From positions 9,114,001-9,178,000 of the forward strand of contig OZ059900.1 of NCBI GenBank assembly GCA_964057225.1: a stretch of DNA of 64,000 bases, given 5' to 3'. Both the position numbers and the translations under genes were made by a program. The notes under the pieces were generated by a model, which was not told where the DNA came from, searched no databases, and saw only the letters and a list, made by a program, of their open reading frames with translations. Source of the DNA: Auanema rhodensis. Lineage: Eukaryota; Animalia; Nematoda. This document shows positions 24,945 through 61,437 of this stretch, piece by piece (positions within the stretch are counted from its first letter, which is position 1; every line of letters begins with the position of its first letter).

Positions 24945-25084
24945 CTGTTTGTTATGCTGGAAAAATAAGAAAAAATAAATAAAACTCTATTGTTAGTTGT
25001 TAAAATTTTTTTTGAATACCATAGTCAATATGTGTGTGAAATGGTACTTTTTTTATTACATGGTTCATATTTTATCTATATATA

Positions 25085-25776
25085 CAGTCATGTGCGATGA
25101 AAGTCGGACACCCACTAGAAACCCTTATATCTGACAAGACAAACTACAAAAATTCAGAAAAAAAATATTTTGAATGTTAAAAAACGATAATGGATTCAGA
25201 AAAAATCTTTAAAGTTTTAAAAATCATGTTTTAAAGTCTTTTCTGAAGTCTTCGAAATTTTCATAAACTGCTTGAAGTCTTCTTTCTTGAATTTCAGAAG
25301 TTTCATTAAGATTTCAGAAATAATTTTTTGATAGAATGTTAAGAGTACACTAAACGTCTATTTTTCTTTTGAACAGGAGAATTTTTTTGTACGTCAACCA
25401 AGTTCTCTTCATAGATATTCAGTAAGATTCAGATGCTGAAGCTTACTTGTTTGAAGCTATGCCATAGGAAAAACTTAGTTATTGATTGAGCTTTCTGCTC
25501 AGAATGATTTAAAGATATTTCTAATGAAGTAACTTCTTCCTAATCTCAAATTTTGTTATATTAAGATGAATTATTCAAAATAGTCAAAAAACACTAAATT
25601 TCCTTATAAATTTAGAAAATAATATTGAAATCAGTATATCAACATATATTTTGACTAAATATAAACTATATGAACTCGCAAAATTTTTGAAATTAAAAAA
25701 AATTTTTTTTTGTAGTTTGAGGGGGTTTTCTGGGGCTTCTAACATAGGGGTGTCCGATTTTCATCGCACATGACTG
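25085..25776 (-). mobile_element. Internally deleted, non-autonomous Tc1/mariner-family element (692 bp), left-arm copy
   Basis: 29-bp TIRs CAGTCATGTGCGATGAAA(G/A)TCGGACACCC with TA flanking both ends (25083-84, 25777-78). It contains a degenerate Tc1 transposase C-terminal remnant (see the mirror copy). Confidence 0.9.
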
Positions 25777-26528
25777 TACATGTATATATGTATAATGATA
25801 TTCTGATTGTAAGATTCTATAACTGAAAACTGAAGAATTGAGAAATTCGGTGATGGTCGATGTAGTTTTGTAAAAAAGTATCGGTTCCATCAAAAACATT
25901 GAGGGAGATCGTTAAGAGTTATTGTGAAGTTATAGAATCTTAGCAAAAATAAACTTGAAAAGTCATTTGAACTCATCGCAAAAACACAACCACAACACAG
26001 ATAAATGAAAAACAATTGGGATCAAACTCTGAAAAGAAAAAAACAAATATTACAATAATTACGGAATATCATATGTATTTGATTTATGTTTTTAAATTTA
26101 AAAAGACTAAATGGAACTATACTATCGTGAGAAGACGTGTCTAAATATTTTTTGTTCAACTTCTTTGGCCGTTGGGGAAGAATAAACGTTCTTATCGAAT
26201 TAACCTTCGATATGTGTTCTGTGTGAGGCCAGCCAAATCGTTTAAGCAGAAATATTAATTATACCCTAATATTCAAGACCCTATTATTCTAATTTTGGAT
26301 TCTCACTATCTATTAGTGAGGAAAATAAAAAGAATCTGATTCAGATAAGAGTTCATTCCAACATGAATTTCGACATTCTATTAGGATCCCCGATGGTTCT
26401 AATCCGCGGGAAGTCCAGATAGACTAAAAGAGAAATAGTGTACGTAACACAAGGCATATTAATAGTTTATCATATATGTAGTATGAATTATCTTATTATA
26501 TATTTTATATTTTATAGTTAATTCATAT

Positions 26529-29046: not shown

Positions 29047-29798
29047 ATATGAATTAACTATAAAATATAAAATATATAATAAGATAATTCATACTACATA
29101 TATGATAAACTATTAATATGCCTTGTGTTACGTACACTATTTCTCTTTTAGTCTATCTGGACTTCCCGCGGATTAGAACCATCGGGGATCCTAATAGAAT
29201 GTCGAAATTCATGTTGGAATGAACTCTTATCTGAATCAGATTCTTTTTATTTTCCTCACTAATAGATAGTGAGAATCCAAAATTAGAATAATAGGGTCTT
29301 GAATATTAGGGTATAATTAATATTTCTGCTTAAACGATTTGGCTGGCCTCACACAGAACACATATCGAAGGTTAATTCGATAAGAACGTTTATTCTTCCC
29401 CAACGGCCAAAGAAGTTGAACAAAAAATATTTAGACACGTCTTCTCACGATAGTATAGTTCCATTTAGTCTTTTTAAATTTAAAAACATAAATCAAATAC
29501 ATATGATATTCCGTAATTATTGTAATATTTGTTTTTTTCTTTTCAGAGTTTGATCCCAATTGTTTTTCATTTATCTGTGTTGTGGTTGTGTTTTTGCGAT
29601 GAGTTCAAATGACTTTTCAAGTTTATTTTTGCTAAGATTCTATAACTTCACAATAACTCTTAACGATCTCCCTCAATGTTTTTGATGGAACCGATACTTT
29701 TTTACAAAACTACATCGACCATCACCGAATTTCTCAATTCTTCAGTTTTCAGTTATAGAATCTTACAATCAGAATATCATTATACATATATACATGTA

Positions 29799-30490
29799 CA
29801 GTCATGTGCGATGAAAATCGGACACCCCTATGTTAGAAGCCCCAGAAAACCCCCTCAAACTACAAAAAAAAATTTTTTTTAATTTCAAAAATTTTGCGAG
29901 TTCATATAGTTTATATTTAGTCAAAATATATGTTGATATACTGATTTCAATATTATTTTCTAAATTTATAAGGAAATTTAGTGTTTTTTGACTATTTTGA
30001 ATAATTCATCTTAATATAACAAAATTTGAGATTAGGAAGAAGTTACTTCATTAGAAATATCTTTAAATCATTCTGAGCAGAAAGTTCAATCAATAACTAA
30101 GTTTTTCCTATGGCATAGCTTCAAACAAGTAAGCTTCAGCATCTGAATCTTACTGAATATCTATGAAGAGAACTTGGTTGACGTACAAAAAAATTCTCCT
30201 GTTCAAAAGAAAAATAGACGTTTAGTGTACTCTTAACATTCTATCAAAAAATTATTTCTGAAATCTTAATGAAACTTCTGAAATTCAAGAAAGAAGACTT
30301 CAAGCAGTTTATGAAAATTTCGAAGACTTCAGAAAAGACTTTAAAACATGATTTTTAAAACTTTAAAGATTTTTTCTGAATCCATTATCGTTTTTTAACA
30401 TTCAAAATATTTTTTTTCTGAATTTTTGTAGTTTGTCTTGTCAGATATAAGGGTTTCTAGTGGGTGTCCGACTTTCATCGCACATGACTG
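29799..30490 (+). mobile_element. Internally deleted Tc1/mariner-family element, right-arm copy
   Basis: TA|CAGTCATGTGCGATG...CATCGCACATGACTG|TA. From 30140 it reads HLNLTEYL*RELG*R (cf. Tc1 DLNPIEHLWEELERR), and from 30292 RRLQAVYEN (cf. Tc1 RRCQAVIDA). Confidence 0.9.
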
Positions 30491-30630
30491 TATATATAGA
30501 TAAAATATGAACCATGTAATAAAAAAAGTACCATTTCACACACATATTGACTATGGTATTCAAAAAAAATTTTAACAACTAACAATAGAGTTTTATTTAT
30601 TTTTTCTTATTTTTCCAGCATAACAAACAG

Positions 30631-52106: not shown

Positions 52107-52152
52107 AAATATATCTTATTCAAAGTTATTTTCAAGTCTTTGGTCGACTTAC

Positions 52153-53070
52153 CTTTTCAGCATACCATCATCAAATTCTTCCCATATCTCTAGTGCTTCA
52201 GATAGCTCTTCTTTGTTGTTATTCTGAAGACTCACAATCCTAACCATAGTCATAACCTTGTTCTGTTTTTCTGTTCGTGACAATTGGCAACAGTTTCCTA
52301 TTTTCATCCCTTCTTTACTCCTTTGTTACTTCGTTTCATATCTTATAGACATGAGTCATACGGATTGAACGCAAGTTATCTCCTATTGTTAGAACGGGCT
52401 CGGCTCAACTTATGAGTACCTCCGTACCTAACAACTACCAATAGGAGATCAGCTTTTATGCTGAACAAACCCCCTGTTTTCTGAAAAAAAAAGGAACTGC
52501 TTACAAATATTCACTCTCAGATTAACTTATTATTTTTATCCACCCTTCATTTTTTTTCAATGTTCTTATTGTATGGCTCTTACTCATGTAACTTCTCATT
52601 TGTACTAATACCGTTTAGCCTGTAATACTGAACAATAAACCAATAAATAAACAAAAATTAATTACTCTCATTTAGTAAATAGTTCATTACTCACACCTTT
52701 AGTAGTTCGTTGATTCTTTCTCCTCGTTAAACATGATAAAATATCTGGTTAGTGAACACATCTTTCACTGTTCGAAGAGATTCACCAATTCCGTTAAATT
52801 GATTTTGTAGTAAAACCTGCAAATAATTAATAATCTAGTGTATCAAACAGAATAGACTTACCAGTTCTTTCTGTTCACTTTTACACTTTCTATGGAGAAG
52901 TAGCGATGCGAAAAGCATCCTATATCTTAGAAGAAAATATTGAACTTTGTTTGAAAAACAATTCTGCGACGTAAATCGTTCTCAGATGATACACTTTGTT
53001 CTTTCATACCTGTTTGCTAGCACCTTCGAGAAGTTTCGAGTGTGACCAAACTCGTCGAGTTCTAGAACTT
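52153..53070 (-). pseudogene. Degenerate spliced gene or non-coding transcript, product unknown
   Basis: Minus-strand donors near 53071, 52861, 52693 and 52152, and acceptors near 52817 (TTTGCAG) and 52481 (TTTTCAG). Protein-like segments (VLLQNQFNGIGESLRTVKDVFTNQIFYHV*RGERINELLK; NNNKEELSEALEIWEEFDDGMLK) are broken by stops. Confidence 0.35.
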
Positions 53071-53199
53071 ACAGATTAACAACTATCTCTTTATCCCTCA
53101 GTTCACTCAATTTGTGATACCTTCACCCTGGCAATTTCTCTTTCTCTATGTGTGACCTTCTCTTCTCTTCCTCACTCTGACCGAGCACAGTCATATATT

Positions 53200-53290
53200 T
53201 GCCCCACTTGAACTAGACGCACGCGACGCAACACGCAAACGCGTTGTGCTAGAGTGGAAGGCAGAGACGCAGAGCAGGGCGAAAAGCTGC
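53200..53290. promoter_or_regulatory. Probable bidirectional promoter, GC-richer patch with GACGCA repeats and GAGACGCAGA
   Basis: GACGCA occurs three times and ACGCA once more within 53216-53271. GAGACGCAGA (TCTGCGTCTC) at 53264-53273 is a known recurrent nematode promoter motif. It lies between two divergent spliced units. Confidence 0.45.
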
Positions 53291-53859
53291 CAACATCGCA
53301 TTCTTCCATTAACTTTTTGAATAGAAATATTCTAAATTGGCATTTTAAACCTTTTAAAAGTATTCCAAAAAGTGTCGTTAATGCAGTAAAAAAAAGGAGT
53401 TCTGTAATAAAAGGGACGCTTAGTTTTTGTTTTGATTTTTTCTCTCCTTTTCTTTCCATAAGAATTGAAAACGTAATGCTGGTCAATAAATTTATTGTGT
53501 TAATTCATAAATCAACTAGCGCAACTTAAAAACTTTAAGCAAGGCAGATCATTCTTTAAAAAGCTTGTGTTCAAACACTAGCTTCGTAGAGAGAAATTCT
53601 TAGACTTCCCTTTTTTCTGTAGCTCGCGCTGATCTTTGTTAGATATTCACTTTGTTTTTTATTTCAGAATGATCCGGTTATGTCGTGGTTATCAGCTAGC
53701 AACCACTATCAGCAATCTAAGAATGGTAAGCTGTTTTGATAGTAAAAAAGGCTTCTAATAAACAAATTTACGAAATGTTTTTATGATCATCACGTAATTC
53801 ACATAGATAACTCAATTTAATTTTTGGTACATAGCAAGCATCTCATTTACACCGTGGAC

Positions 53860-54580
53860 ATGTTAATAAACAGAGCCACGGGATACTTAAAGGAAAACGA
53901 TACTGCTCAAGCCTCCGAAAAGTCATTCCAAGTATGTATTTTTTCAATTTTATTTTTAATGTAATTCAATGCATTGAAAGTTATAGCACTTTTTGCTTAA
54001 GCCTTCTAATCTTTATTGGATTGTTTCTAGGCCTCAAAACTGGTTCTGATGGAATACGTCCGAAGGCTTGAAGTAACGACTGACGTCGAAATTGTGCCAC
54101 ATCACCTCGACAACCCTTGGAGTTATAAGTCCTTGAACAAGCTTTGCCGTCTACTCGCCAAGAAGTGCGATCAAGATGTGGCTAACGCTATTGTGGCAGG
54201 ATGGAAATCAGCGTACGAGTAAGATATAATTACTGATTTGGAGATTTTTACTTGTTTTTTAGATTCCACATCAAAGGTTGGACGCAAAACGACCTGTCGG
54301 TGGAGGATGTCACTTTTGCACTGCCTTTCGTTCTTCGGTAAAGTGAAGAGCTGTTTATTTGAATTATTATTTTTTTAGATTCATTCATATCGTCGATAAA
54401 GAGCTGATGGTCAATCTCGAAATGGCGACATACGTCAAAGAGAATCTTTTCATCTTCAACAACGAAGAAATCGCGACAGATATATACAAGGTTATTATTA
54501 AAACAAAATATAATAGTTTATAATTTATATATTTATAGGAGGCGAATCTGGAAGGGTCACTCAGCTCTTGCAAAACTTAA
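53860..54580 (+). CDS. PaREP1-family / HEPN-like domain protein, spliced (>=162 aa)
   Basis: Exons 53860-53931, 54031-54218, 54263-54337, 54379-54490 and 54539-54580. GT-AG introns of 99, 44, 41 and 48 nt, all phase-consistent. Protein: MLINRATGYLKENDTAQASEKSFQASKLVLMEYVRRLEV...PWSYKSLNKLCRLLAKK...AIVAGWKSAYEFHIKGWTQNDLSVEDVTFALPFVLRFIHIV... It matches remembered PaREP1 motifs (L..gD..QASEK...A; WS...L......L; W..A..LH..gf....l..edV). An upstream exon 53669-53725 (TTTCAG-A-ATG) may extend the N-terminus. Confidence 0.8.
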
Positions 54581-54614
54581 AAATCAGAAGAGAGCTGGTA
54601 AATTTTATTTAAAA

Positions 54615-57600
54615 ATTCAATAATGAAGATGAATAAAGAGAAAGAAAGATCTATATAAAATCATAAGTAACAGTCAAAACTATAAATAATTCCATGTTGA
54701 TTTTCAAAACAACATGTATAGGGAAAAGATGATATCGATTGAAATTCCAACAAAAATTAAAATTTTCGAAACAATTACATTCAATAATGAAGATGAATAA
54801 AGAGAAAGAAAGATCTATAGAGAATCACAAGTAACAGTTAAAACTATAGACAATTCCATATTGATTTTCAAAACAACATGTATAGGGATAAGATGATATC
54901 GATTGAAATTTCAAGAGAAATAAAAATTTTCGAAACAATTCAATTCAATACTTAAGATGATTAAAGAGAAGGAAATATCTATATAGAATCACAAGTAACA
55001 GTCAAAACTATAGACAATTCCATATTGATTATCAAAACAACATGTATAGGTAAAAGATGATATTGATTGAAATTTCAAGAGAAATAAAAATTTTCGAAAC
55101 AATTCAATTCAATACTGAAAATGATTAAAGAGAAGGAAATATCTATAGAGAATCACAAGTAACAGTCAAAACTATAGACAATTCCATATTGATTATCAAA
55201 ACAACATGTAAAGGTAAAAGATGATATCGATTGAAATTTCAAGAGAAATAAAAATTTTCGAAACAATTCAATTCAATACTTAAGATGATTAAAGAGAAGG
55301 AAATATCTATAGAGAATCACAAGTAACAGTCAAAACTATAGACAATTCCATATTGATTATCAAAACAACATGTATAGGTAAAAGATGATATCGATTGAAA
55401 TTTCAAGAGAAATAAAAATTTTCGAAACAATTCAATTCAATACTTAAGATGATTAAAGAGAAGGAAATATCTATATAGAATCACAAGTAACAGTCAAAAC
55501 TATAGACAATTCCATATTGATTATCAAAACAACATGTATAGGGAAGAGATGATATCGATTGAAATTTCAAGAGAAATAAAAATTTTCGAAACAATTCAAT
55601 TCAATACTGAAAATGATTAAAGAGAAGGAAATATCTATAGAGAATCACAAGTAACAGTCAAAACTATAGACAATTCCATATTGATTATCAAAACAACATG
55701 TATAGGTAAAAGATGATATCGATTGAAATTTCAAGAGAAATAAAAATTTTCGAAACAATTCAATTCAATACTTAAGATGATTAAAGAGAAGGAAATATCT
55801 ATATAGAATCACAAGTAACAGTCAAAACTATAGACAATTCCATATTGATTATCAAAACAACATGTATAGGTAAAAGATGATATCGATTGAAATTTCAAGA
55901 GAAATAAAAATTTTCGAAACAATTCAATTCAATACTTAAGATGATTAAAGAGAAGGAAATATCTATATAGAATCACAAGTAACAGTCAAAACTATAGACA
56001 ATTCCATATTGATTATCAAAACAACATGTATAGGGAAGAGATGATATCGATTGAAATTTCAAGAGAAATAAAAATTTTCGAAACAATTCAATTCAATACT
56101 GAAAATGATTAAAGAGAAGGAAATATCTATATAGAATCACAAGTAACAGTCAAAACTATAGACAATTCCATATTGATTATCAAAACAACATGTATAGGTA
56201 AAAGATGATATCGATTGAAATTTAAAGAGAAATAAAAATTTTCGAAACAATTCAATTCAATAATGAAGATGATTAAAGAGAAGGAAATATCTATATAGAA
56301 TCACAAGTAACAGTCAAAACTATAGATAATTCCATATTGATTATCAAAACAACATGTATAGGTAAAAGATGATATCGATTGAAATTTAAAGAGAAATAAA
56401 AATTTTCGAAACAATTCAATTCAATAATGAAGATGATTAAAGAGAAGGAAATATCTATATAGAATCACAAGTAACAGTCAAAACTATAGACAATTCCATA
56501 TTGATTATCAAAACAACATGTATAGGTAAAAGATGATATCGATTGAAATTTAAAGAGAAATAAAAATTTTCGAAACAATTCAATTCAATACTGAAATTGA
56601 TTAAACAGAAAGAGAGATCTATATAGAATCACAAGTAAAAGTAAAAACTATAGACAATTCCATATTGATTATCAAAACAACATGTATAGGGAAGAGATGA
56701 TATCGATTGAAATTTCAAGAGAAATAAAAATTTTCGAAACAACTCAATTCAATACTTAAGATGATTAAAGAGAAGGAAATATCTATATAGAATCACAAGT
56801 AACAGTCAAAACTATAGACAATTCCATATTGATTATCAAAACAACATGTAAAGGTAAAAGATGATATCGATTGAAATTTCAAGAGAAATAAAAATTTTCG
56901 AAACAATTCAATTCAATACTGAAATTGATTAAACAGAAAGAGAGATCTATATAGAATCACAAGTAACAGTCAAAACTATAGACAATTCCATATTGATTAT
57001 CAAAACAACATGTATAGGGAAGAGATGATATCGATTGAAATTTCAAGAGAAATAAAAATTTTCGAAACAATTCAATTCAATACTGAAAATGATTAAAGAG
57101 AAGGAAATATCTATATAGAATCACAAGTAACAGTCAAAACTATAGACATTTCCATATTGATTATCAAAACAACATGTATAGGTAAAAGATGATATCGATT
57201 GAAATTTCAAGAGAAATAAAAATTTTCGAAACAATTCAATTCAATACTGAAATTGATTAAACAGAAAGAGAGATCTATATAGAATCACAAAAAATGATTA
57301 AACAGAAAGAGAGATCTATATAGAATCACAAGTAACAGTCAAAACTATAGACAATTCCATATTGATTATCAAAACAACATGTATAGGTAAAAGATGATAT
57401 CGATTGAAATTTCAAGAGAAATAAAAATTTTCGAAACAATTCAATTCAATACTGAAAATGATTAAACAGAAAGAGAGATCTATAAAGAATCACAAGTAAA
57501 AGTAAAAACTATAGACAATTCCATATTGATTTTCAATATAACATGTATAGGTAAAAGATGATATCGATTGAAATTTCAAGAGAAATAAAAATTTTCGAAA

Positions 57601-60600
57601 CAATTCAATTCAATACTGAAAATGATTAAACAGAAAGAGAGATCTATAAAGAATCACAAGTAAAAGTAAAAACTATAGACAATTCCATATTGATTTTCAA
57701 TATAATATGTATAGGTAAAAGATGATATCGATTGAAATTTCAAGAGAAATAAAAATTTTCGAAACAATTCAATTCAATACTGAAAATGATTAAACAGAAA
57801 GAGAGATCTATATAGAATCACAAGTAACAGTCAAAACTATAGACAATTCCATATTGATTTTCAATATAACATGTATAGGTAAAAGATGATATCGATTGAA
57901 ATTTCAAGAGAAATAAAAATTTTCGAAACAATTCAATTCAATACTGAAAATGATTAAACAGAAAGAGAGATCTATATAGAATCACAAGTAACAGTCAAAA
58001 CTATAGACAATTCCATATTGATTTTCAATATAACATGTATAGGTAAAAGATGATATCGATTGAAATTTCAACAAAAATAAAAATTTTCGAAACAATTCAA
58101 TTCAATACTGAAAATGATTAAACAGAAAGAGAGATCTATAGAGAATCACAAGTAAAAGTAAAAACTATAGACAATTCCATATTGATTATCAAAACAACAT
58201 GTATAGGTAAAAGATGATATCGATTGAAATTTCAACAAAAATAAAAAGTTTCGAAACAATTCAATTCAATACTGAAAATGATTAAACAGAAAGAGAGATC
58301 TATAGAGAATCACAAGTAAAAGTAAAAACTATAGACAATTCCATATTGATTATCAAAACAACATGTATAGGTAAAAGATGATATCGATTGAAATTTCAAG
58401 AGAAATAAAAATTTTCGAAACAATTCAATTCAATACTTAAGATGATTAAAGAGAAGAAAATATCTATATAGAATCACAAGTAACAGTCAAAACTATAGAC
58501 AATTCCATATTGATTATCAAAACAACATGTATAGGTAAAAGATGATATCGATTGAAATTTCAAGAGAAATAAAAATTTTCGAAACAATTCAATTCAATAC
58601 TGAAAATGATTAAACAGAAAGAGAGATCTATAGAGAATCACAAGTAAAAGTAAAAACTATAGACAATTCCATATTGATTATCAAAACAACATGTATAGGG
58701 AAGAGATGATATCGATTGAAATTTCAAGAGAAATAAAAATTTTCGAAACAATTCAATTCAATACTTAAGATGATTAAAGAGAAGAAAATATCTATATAGA
58801 ATCACAATTAACAGTCAAAACTATAGACAATTCCATATTGATTATCAAAAGAACATGTATAGGTAAAAGATGATATCGATTGAAATTTCAAGAGAAATAA
58901 AAATTTTCGAAACAATTCAATTCAATACTTAAGATGATTAAAGAGAAGGAAATATCTATATAGAATCACAAGTAACAGTCAAAACTATAGACAATTCCAT
59001 ATTGATTATCAAAACAACATGTATAGGTAAAAGATGATATCGATTGAAATTTCAAGAGAAATAAAAATTTTCGAAACAATTCAATTCAATACTGAAAATG
59101 ATCAAACAGAAAGAGAGATCTATAGAGAATCACAAGTAACAGTTAAAACTATAGACAATTCCATATTGATTATCAAAACAACATGTATAGGTAAAAGATG
59201 ATATCGATTGAAATTTCAACAAAAATTAAAATTTTCGAAACAATTCAATTCAATACTGAAAATGATTAAAGAGAAGGAAATATCTATATAGAATCACAAG
59301 TAACAGTTAAAACTATAGACAATTCCATATTGATTTTCAAAACAACATGTATAGGGAAGAGATGATATCGATTGAAATTTCAAGAGAAATTAAAATTTTC
59401 GAAACAATTCAATTCAATACTGAAAATGATCAAACAGAAAGAGAGATCTATAGAGAATCACAAGTAACAGTTAAAACTATAGACAATTCCATATTGATTA
59501 TCAAAACAACATGTATAGGTAAAAGATGATATCGATTGAAATTTCAAGAGAAATAAAAATTTTCGAAACAATTCAATTCAATACTGAAAATGATTAAACA
59601 GAAAGAGAGATCTATAGAGAATCACAAGTAAAAGTAAAAACTATTGATAATTCCATATTGATTATCAAAACAACATGTATAGGGAAGAGATGATATCGAT
59701 TGAAATTTCAAGAGAAATAAAAATTTTCGAAACAATTCAATTCAATACTGAAAATGATTAAAGAGAAGGAAATATCTATATAGAATCACAAGTAACAGTC
59801 AAAACTATAGACAATTCCATATTGATTATCAAAACAACATGTATAGGTAAAAGATGATATCGATTGAAATTTCAAGAGAAATAAAAATTTTCGAAACAAT
59901 TCAATTCAATACTGAAAATGATTAAAGAGAAGGAAATATCTATATAGAATCACAAGTAACAGTCAAAACTATAGACAATTCCATATTGATTATCAAAACA
60001 ACATGTATAGGTAAAAGATGATATCGATTGAAATTTCAAGAGAAATAAAAATTTTCGAAACAATTCAATTCAATACTGAAAATGATTAAACAGAAAGAGA
60101 GATCTATAGAGAATCACAAGTAAAAGTAAAAACTATTGATAATTCCATATTGATTATCAAAACAACATGTATAGGGAAGAGATGATATCGATTGAAATTT
60201 CAAGAGAAATAAAAATTTTCGAAACAATTCAATTCAATACTGAAAATGATTAAAGAGAAGGAAATATCTATATAGAATCACAAGTAACAGTCAAAACTAT
60301 AGACAATTCCATATTGATTATCAAAACAACATGTATAGGTAAAAGATGATATCGATTGAAATTTCAAGAGAAATAAAAATTTTCGAAACAATTCAATTCA
60401 ATACTGAAAATGATTAAAGAGAAGGAAATATCTATATAGAATCACAAGTAACAGTCAAAACTATAGACAATTCCATATTGATTATCAAAACAACATGTAT
60501 AGGTAAAAGATGATATCGATTGAAATTTCAAGAGAAATAAAAATTTTCGAAACAATTCAATTCAATACTGAAAATGATTAAAGAGAAGGAAATATCTATA

Positions 60601-61437
60601 TAGAATCACAAGTAACAGTCAAAACTATAGATAATTCCATATTGATTATCAAAACAACATGTATAGGTAAAAGATGATATCGATTGAAATTTCAACAAAA
60701 ATAAAAAGTTTCGAAACAATTCAATTCAATACTGAAAATGATTAAAGAGAAGGAAATATCTATATAGAATCACAAGTAACAGTCAAAACTATAGACAATT
60801 CCATATTGATTATCAAAACAACATGTATAGGTAAAAGATGATATCGATTGAAATTTCAACAAAAATAAAAATTTTCGAAACAATTCAATTCAATACTGAA
60901 AATGATTAAAGAGAAGGAAATATCTATATAGAATCACAAGTAAAAGTAAAAACTATAGACAATTCCATATTGATTATCAAAACAACATGTATAGGTAAAA
61001 GATGATATCGATTGAAATTTCAACAAAAATAAAAAGTTTCGAAACAATTCAATTCAATACTGAAAATGATTAAACAGAAAGAGAGATCTATATAGAATCA
61101 CAAGTAAAAGTAAAAACTATAGACAATTCCATATTGATTATCAAAACAACATGTATAGGTAAAAGATGATATCGATTGAAATTTCAACAAAAATAAAAAG
61201 TTTCGAAACAATTCAATTCAATAATGAAGATGATTAAAGAGAAGGAAATATCTATATAGAATCACAAGTAAAAGTAAAAACTATTGATAATTCCATATTG
61301 ATTTTCAAAACAACATGTATAGGTAAAAGATGATATCGATTGAAATTTCAAGAGAAATAAAAATTTTCGAAACAATACAATTCAATACTGAAGATGATCA
61401 GAGAGAAGGAAATATCTATAGAGAATCACAAGTAACA
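54615..61437 (+). repeat. 164-bp tandem satellite, array 3 (~41 units, more heterogeneous 'outer' subtype)
   Basis: Same monomer with variants GTAACAGTC, GATTAAAGAG, TTCAATTCAA and GATTATC. One 41-bp internal duplication at 57291-57331. Confidence 0.99.

Follow-up and report, generated by a model that had tools for sequence, protein, structure and literature searches.

The window, which is the whole 64,000-nucleotide stretch of Auanema rhodensis DNA that was analyzed, very probably contains a vertically inherited nematode member of the PaREP1/PaREP8-type HEPN family (HEPN-T), which is transcribed, damaged at both ends and conserved in its introns. As a nematode PaREP1-type HEPN gene it adds little, since both the family and its origin, probably ancient and archaeal, have been in the literature since 2013. 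At the same time, the unusual conservation of its introns makes it a compact and convenient system for studying which constraints act on introns of this kind.

Structure and transcription of the gene

The gene is located in a unique island of 2.5 kb (52114–54613) between arrays of a 164-bp satellite, which fills positions 1–24953, 30631–52113 and 54614–61437 of the window; the sequence-only reading that preceded this analysis had placed it correctly between satellite arrays. Five open pieces with compatible phases (72 + 188 + 75 + 112 + 42 nt) give the frame of 162 aa from the ATG at 53860 that had been proposed there, and the motifs quoted for it, QASEK, WSYKSL, WKSAYEFHIKGW and LSVEDV, are all present. 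The codon begun by the final two bases of exon 3 takes its third base from the start of exon 4, and exons 4 and 5 are connected in the same way. The exon lengths in the window are 57, 105, 188, 75, 112 and 59 nt, and the parts of the locus are as follows, where "Auanema gene" is the relative from Auanema sp. JU1783 and "C4 paralog" is the only other copy in the same genome, on contig C4.

53602–53650, + strand: conserved upstream non-coding block, 86% identical over 51 nt to a segment upstream of the Caenorhabditis auriculariae relative (L013:5832-5882)
53669–53725, + strand: ancestral exon 1, now uncoupled; 19 codons, ATG at 53669
53726–53826, + strand: ancestral intron 1, GT...TG, retained; contig continuous over 53699–53931 in runs X1 and X2
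53827–53931, + strand: ancestral exon 2, 105 nt; the in-frame ATG at 53860 is the first that can be used; carries QASEK
53932–54030, + strand: intron 2, 99 nt, spliced out; joint 53931>54031 in three runs
54031–54218, + strand: exon 3, 188 nt, encoding the core of the HEPN bundle; the Auanema gene has an exon equal in length and phase
54219–54262, + strand: intron 3, 44 nt, spliced out; joint 54218>54263
54263–54337, + strand: exon 4, 75 nt, containing the conserved His within FHIKGW; a 75-nt exon also in the Auanema and C. auriculariae genes
54338–54378, + strand: intron 4, 41 nt, spliced out; joint 54336/7>54378/9
54379–54490, + strand: exon 5, 112 nt, C-terminal helices; 112 nt also in the C. 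auriculariae gene
54491–54538, + strand: putative intron 5, 48 nt, the most conserved segment; 46/48 positions identical to the C4 paralog
54539–54597, + strand: exon 6 remnant, frameshifted; stop at 54578–54580, donor at 54598

Three small public RNA runs from one organism yielded a contig of up to 614 nt with zero mismatches to the window gene, covering 53699–53931, 54031–54218, 54263–54336 and 54378–54491 with GT..AG joints. Because this contig matches the exons with GT..AG joints, the runs contain cDNA of the gene. Three of the predicted junctions (53931>54031, 54218>54263 and 54336/7>54378/9) were seen in the spliced contigs of the three runs; the gene is real and transcribed, and introns 2–4 are removed exactly as predicted. 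The contig depth was 78 and 96 in two runs versus 3–7 for neighboring contigs, and the window copy is strongly transcribed.

The proposed extent of the feature (53669–54580) was thus borne out at these three junctions, but not at its two ends. The contigs are unspliced across 53726–53826, leaving exon 53669–53725 unjoined, and no AG acceptor would bring this upstream exon into frame, so that 53669–53859 is not coding for the 162-aa model. The junction 54490>54539 was absent from the contigs, which end 2–5 unmatched letters past 54491, and no RNA contig covered 54549–54600 (exon 6). A separate contig that includes 54492–54541 and has unlike flanks derives from the C4 paralog. Retention of intron 5 would end the frame with VIIKTKYNSL and a stop at 54523.

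Family assignment and fold

The assignment to PaREP1/HEPN made in the sequence-only reading is supported at the family level via full-length relatives; the membership of the window copy rests on its exon-wise similarity to these relatives, and the full-length profile and fold scores given below are those of the relatives. Searching exon 3 against a library of 1.84 billion proteins resulted in 13 relatives (best E 2.8e-14), with full-length ones from Auanema sp. JU1783, C. auriculariae and Acrobeloides nanus. Two full-length relatives, P0006 and P0004, score 37.7 and 35.6 bits with Pfam PaREP1 (PF05942), for which the gathering score is 24.4 bits. P0006 is 35–70% identical to four exon pieces of the window, with a summed E of 1e-36 in a tblastn search against the window. 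When the window exons were scanned singly, exon 2 was the sole one to match PF05942 (15.1 bits, E 0.022, profile positions 8–31). NCBIfam gave no match with the window exons, phmmer of exon 3 against the PDB gave none, and the ESM Atlas gave no usable match with exon 3; a six-frame search of the own genome with PF05942 was empty because the exon pieces are too weak. Another PaREP1-like locus at 14.086 Mb of contig C8 (L011) has no similarity to the subfamily of the window gene.

A profile built from the relatives and the window exons (A1) matched the PDB entries 2jpu/2q00 with an E of 3.6e-5, in an alignment that sets QASEK against QACEK and WKSAYEFH..GW against WKSAWTLH..GF. The His of exon 4 aligns with the His of LHVEGF in 2jpu/2q00; in the stretch W-K-S-A-Y-E-F-H, aligned with WKSAWTLH of 2jpu, the His is present and the Arg of the Rx4-6H motif is absent. 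The K-x5-H motif that had been read from the sequence is the same as that of Sulfolobus 2q00, and the conserved His is kept in 6/7 nematode relatives. The AlphaFold model of P0006 has a pLDDT of 83.6, with residues 1–24 disordered. Foldseek ranked 2q00 first for this model, and VIA-align superposed the two with a Z of 13.2 over 118/120 residues at 22% identity, followed by nine HEPN entries in an unbroken run, including 2hsb, 1ufb, 1wol, sacsin and 1o3u. Among the clusters of the ESM Atlas, the nearest are those of PaREP1 from archaea and bacteria.

The best match in both sequence profile and fold is therefore the Sulfolobus solfataricus protein P95883 (Orf c02003; 2q00, 2jpu), which shares QA[CS]EK and WKSA..(L/F)H.(E/K)G(F/W) with the nematode family. 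Unlike the nematode family, P95883 has only about 120 aa and is without introns, N-terminal leader or extra C-terminal helices. The HEPN-MNT modules (HepT/MntA, 6m6w, 7ae9) belong to a common fold class, with structural matches of Z 6–8, but they carry the Rx4-6H motif and an adjacent nucleotidyltransferase antitoxin, whereas the window gene has neither the Arg nor a partner gene. To our knowledge, RNase activity is known for no PaREP1 protein.

The PaREP1/8 HEPN-T family has been known in nematodes since 2013, when it was reported that Caenorhabditis had acquired it, with crenarchaea as the apparent source, and that it had expanded in this genus, with a suggested role in germline defense (PMC3710099). 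Absence of the Rx4-6H Arg with retention of the His is a trait of this family (PMC3710099), and the window gene resembles its members in coding for a small standalone protein with the Arg missing and the His kept; intron conservation, in contrast to the present analysis, was not reported there.

Decay of the window copy and of its relatives

At the 5' end, the old acceptor AG of intron 1 at 53825–26 is now TG in the window, and intron 1 is retained because of this change. In run X5, which is DNA-like and comes from an organism 95–99% similar, position 53825 is an A and the AG acceptor is intact. The uncoupled exon 1 has homologs in exon 1 of the C4 paralog, which is there in frame with exon 2, and in the first exon (54 nt) of both the Auanema and the C. 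auriculariae gene; moreover, the C4 paralog and the Auanema gene have an intron at the position matching intron 1 of the window. On the unspliced leader, the exon-1 ATG opens only an ORF of 29 aa, and besides this ORF three more short upstream ORFs precede the ATG at 53860. At the 3' end, exon 6 has 59 nt versus 61 nt in C. auriculariae, the tail of the relatives resembles its +1 frame, and the exon-6 frame of the 162-aa model stops early. The satellite starts 16 nt after the donor at 54598 (at 54614); a search for a further exon past exon 6 or beyond the satellite found none, and the gene lacks its last exon where the satellite begins.

The organism of run X5 carries a different lesion. A 5-nt insertion at 54451–54453 leads to a stop in exon 5 (low depth), and one synonymous and four non-synonymous differences from the window were counted in this run (low depth); together, these differences and the stop insertion are compatible with relaxed constraint. 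Two close relatives thus differ in their lesion, with acceptor loss in the window and a premature stop in X5, and this provides a snapshot of gene decay within satellite DNA.

The sole paralog in the genome (C4:10860014-10861396, L005) has two frameshifts in exon 3, its introns 3 and 5 have lost their donors, and its intron 3 contains a MITE-like insertion that has terminal inverted repeats. It is nevertheless transcribed, with intron 5 retained, and is a transcribed pseudogene. Whether the own genome was searched with exon 2 or exon 3, a profile of exon 3, the DNA of the gene or the core of intron 5, the window and C4 copies were the only matches. The C. auriculariae relative is broken too: its exon 2 contains a stop, and its exon 3 is interrupted by an insertion of about 985 nt. 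In its annotation (L013:6001-7993, CAD6192771.1), exon 2 with the stop is skipped and the insertion of about 985 nt is partly annotated as exons; this 227-aa annotation appears to be a wrongly called model of a broken gene.

All of this damage, with at least three upstream ATGs before the HEPN ORF, is what would be expected if the window copy were itself a transcribed pseudogene, giving RNA but no working protein, in a subfamily that is dying in this lineage. We regard this as a serious possibility, although one with distinctly less than an even chance. The four domain-coding exons of the window copy are open with their conserved motifs intact, introns 2–4 are spliced accurately in contigs of high depth, and the lesions are located outside the folded domain, the corresponding N-terminal residues of the modeled relative being disordered; each of these features speaks against complete loss of the protein.

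Conservation of the introns

Nematode introns normally cannot be aligned between genera. In comparisons of the window gene with the C4 paralog and with the genes of Auanema sp. and C. auriculariae, the introns were 77–83% identical versus 57–65% for exons 2–5. Taken one by one, the introns gave identities of 0.68–0.86 against 0.51–0.61 for shuffles (z 4.5–11), while the exons across genera are about 57–69% identical. Intron 2 is 81% identical to that of Auanema (z 11.1) and 75% to that of C. auriculariae (z 7.8); the respective values are 0.74 (z 4.5) and 0.80 (z 6.5) for intron 3 and 0.80 (z 5.9) and 0.78 (z 4.7) for intron 4, and intron 5 reaches 0.86 to C. auriculariae (z 6.5). Against the near-identity of intron 5 between the window and the C4 paralog, the exons of the paralog are 56–63% identical. 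At the third positions of codons for identical amino acids, the identity is 45–53%. The gene Utp11, which served as the control from the same two Auanema genomes, has a coding sequence 67% identical and introns at chance (z −0.1 to 1.4). Moreover, the intron conservation persists in copies with broken reading frames.

Several origins of this similarity were considered and rejected. Recent transfer between nematodes cannot explain it because the synonymous sites are saturated, and an introner or repeat origin was rejected as the introns are unique in the genome. A mirtron or another structured RNA within the introns was likewise rejected, their folds being no better than shuffles (z −1.9 to +1.2). 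A search of the introns in Rfam gave no family at gathering score; a snoU30-like C/D-box match at 53707–53797 on the − strand, antisense in intron 1, scored 25.8 against the 45 bits required, its C box is not conserved in the relatives, and it is probably due to chance.

Genes with introns more conserved than exons are known, namely the snoRNA host genes and the snake-venom PLA2 genes. As in the former, non-coding conservation exceeds coding conservation in the window gene, but its introns are without a snoRNA or hairpin. The same excess is found in the PLA2 genes; in the window gene, however, dN/dS is about 0.1 and dS is saturated, and the pattern consequently results from constrained introns and not from accelerated protein evolution. 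In our literature search, no paper was found on conserved introns in nematodes, nor on HEPN with Maverick.

Purifying selection on the primary sequence of the introns is the simplest reading of these alignments. That purifying selection, strong and sequence-specific, acts on all five introns and on the upstream block in both Auanema and Caenorhabditis, which would thus carry a non-coding function not described before, is an attractive proposal to which we give a little under an even chance. Its candidate forms possibly include sites on the pre-mRNA to which the RNA-binding HEPN protein would attach to regulate its own expression, or unusually dense regulatory DNA.

A stronger version, in which the non-coding product is what is selected, with functional introns and upstream block and coding exons of secondary importance, would account for introns more similar than exons with saturated third positions and for their conservation in broken copies. 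This version seems unlikely to us: codon positions 1 and 2 are 72–75% identical versus 34–46% at position 3, the introns show neither a stable fold nor an Rfam family, and no intron-derived contig was present among the RNA runs. Judged by codon position, the pattern shows long-term selection at the protein level.

Vertical descent

The exons of the gene in Auanema sp. JU1783 are 54, 105, 188, 75 and 106 nt long, its exon 2 being equal in length to that of the window, and in C. auriculariae the exons at the places matching the window gene measure 75, 112 and 61 nt. The intron phases are identical in all three genes. Between genera, dN is 0.30–0.35 with saturated synonymous sites. Since exon lengths and intron phases are common to the relatives, vertical inheritance follows, and by this comparison the window gene is of old vertical descent and not a recent transfer. 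The family therefore extends past Caenorhabditis to Auanema and, through Acrobeloides, to a cephalobid with its exon–intron structure fixed, which implies that acquisition and intron gain predate the split of those lineages.

The sequence-only reading had suggested that the gene was acquired horizontally from prokaryotes and intronized in this genome, and had itself counted broad vertical distribution against such a transfer, which is what old descent now speaks for. It is very improbable that the gene is a recent prokaryotic acquisition serving as a toxin or defense RNase in a selfish toxin–antidote locus within the satellite, even though, outside the nematodes, its closest relatives are PaREP1 proteins of archaea and bacteria, toxins are frequent among HEPN domains (Anantharaman 2013, PMC3710099) and the location between satellite arrays is real, since the genes of Auanema sp. 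JU1783 and C. auriculariae have the same intron positions, Acrobeloides also has a relative, synonymous sites among the homologs are saturated, and the gene, decaying like its paralog, is damaged at both ends in an island that holds no second gene. Only the PaREP1-like gene and the dispersed repeats were found in the island 52114–54613, and no MNT-like partner was found near the gene, its neighborhood being otherwise satellite.

Proposed gene and its product

The vertically inherited ancestral gene would have had at least six exons, and its product would have begun with a short leader, basic and hydrophobic, continued with a helical HEPN bundle containing QA[SC]EK and W-x-x-A-x-x-F-H-x-x-G-W, and ended in a helical tail that varies. 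The window copy has three lesions: the change of the intron-1 acceptor from AG to TG, by which exon 1 is left unjoined and the leader lost; the frameshift in exon 6; and the loss of the last exon at the satellite edge. The HEPN domain is still open from the ATG at 53860 and, if translation starts at this internal ATG behind at least three upstream ATGs, the product would be a protein of about 160 aa encoded downstream of several short upstream ORFs. By analogy with other HEPN proteins, it may act on RNA as a dimer, binding it and possibly cutting it by means of the conserved His; the canonical Arg is absent from the PaREP1 clade. The conserved introns and the upstream block would have a sequence-specific non-coding function, for which packed regulatory DNA or protein-binding sites on the pre-mRNA appear the likeliest forms.

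Chromosomal setting

The left part of the island (about 52244–53330) consists of dispersed repeats. Beside the gene, a 404-bp dispersed element (52244–52647) has copies 99–100% identical on contigs C3, C4, C5 and C7, and it looks like a young mobile element. The MITE-like insertion of the C4 paralog is 85–88% identical to positions 25079–25793 and 29782–30496 of the window, which are the arms of the window palindrome. The genome contains 1,267 exact copies of the SL1 spliced leader, by which the host is identified as a nematode; the listed copies form a tandem array with a period of about 252 bp from C3:6741531 onward. Mesorhabditis belari was considered as the source and rejected, Sat65 being absent.

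The window is located at 9.11–9.18 Mb of contig C8. Periodic copies of the motif at which DNA breaks in programmed elimination have been described for the X chromosome (preprint 10.64898/2026.08.27.747507), and six copies of the core with 3,495-bp spacing are present near 14.22 Mb (C8:14217207-14234692); because these periodic copies match that description, C8 is probably the X chromosome. Further copies of the published core on C8 are found at 5.50, 6.46, 9.641, 9.645 and 10.707 Mb, with the window between them, and the core is present neither in the window nor within the 200 kb that follow it. The island may be restricted to the germline or may belong to the X repeat block that the soma retains. 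At 10.707 Mb, the DNA is non-repetitive to the left of the site and tandemly repeated to its right; the window itself lies at the right edge of a tandem-repeat block, with non-repetitive DNA following it.
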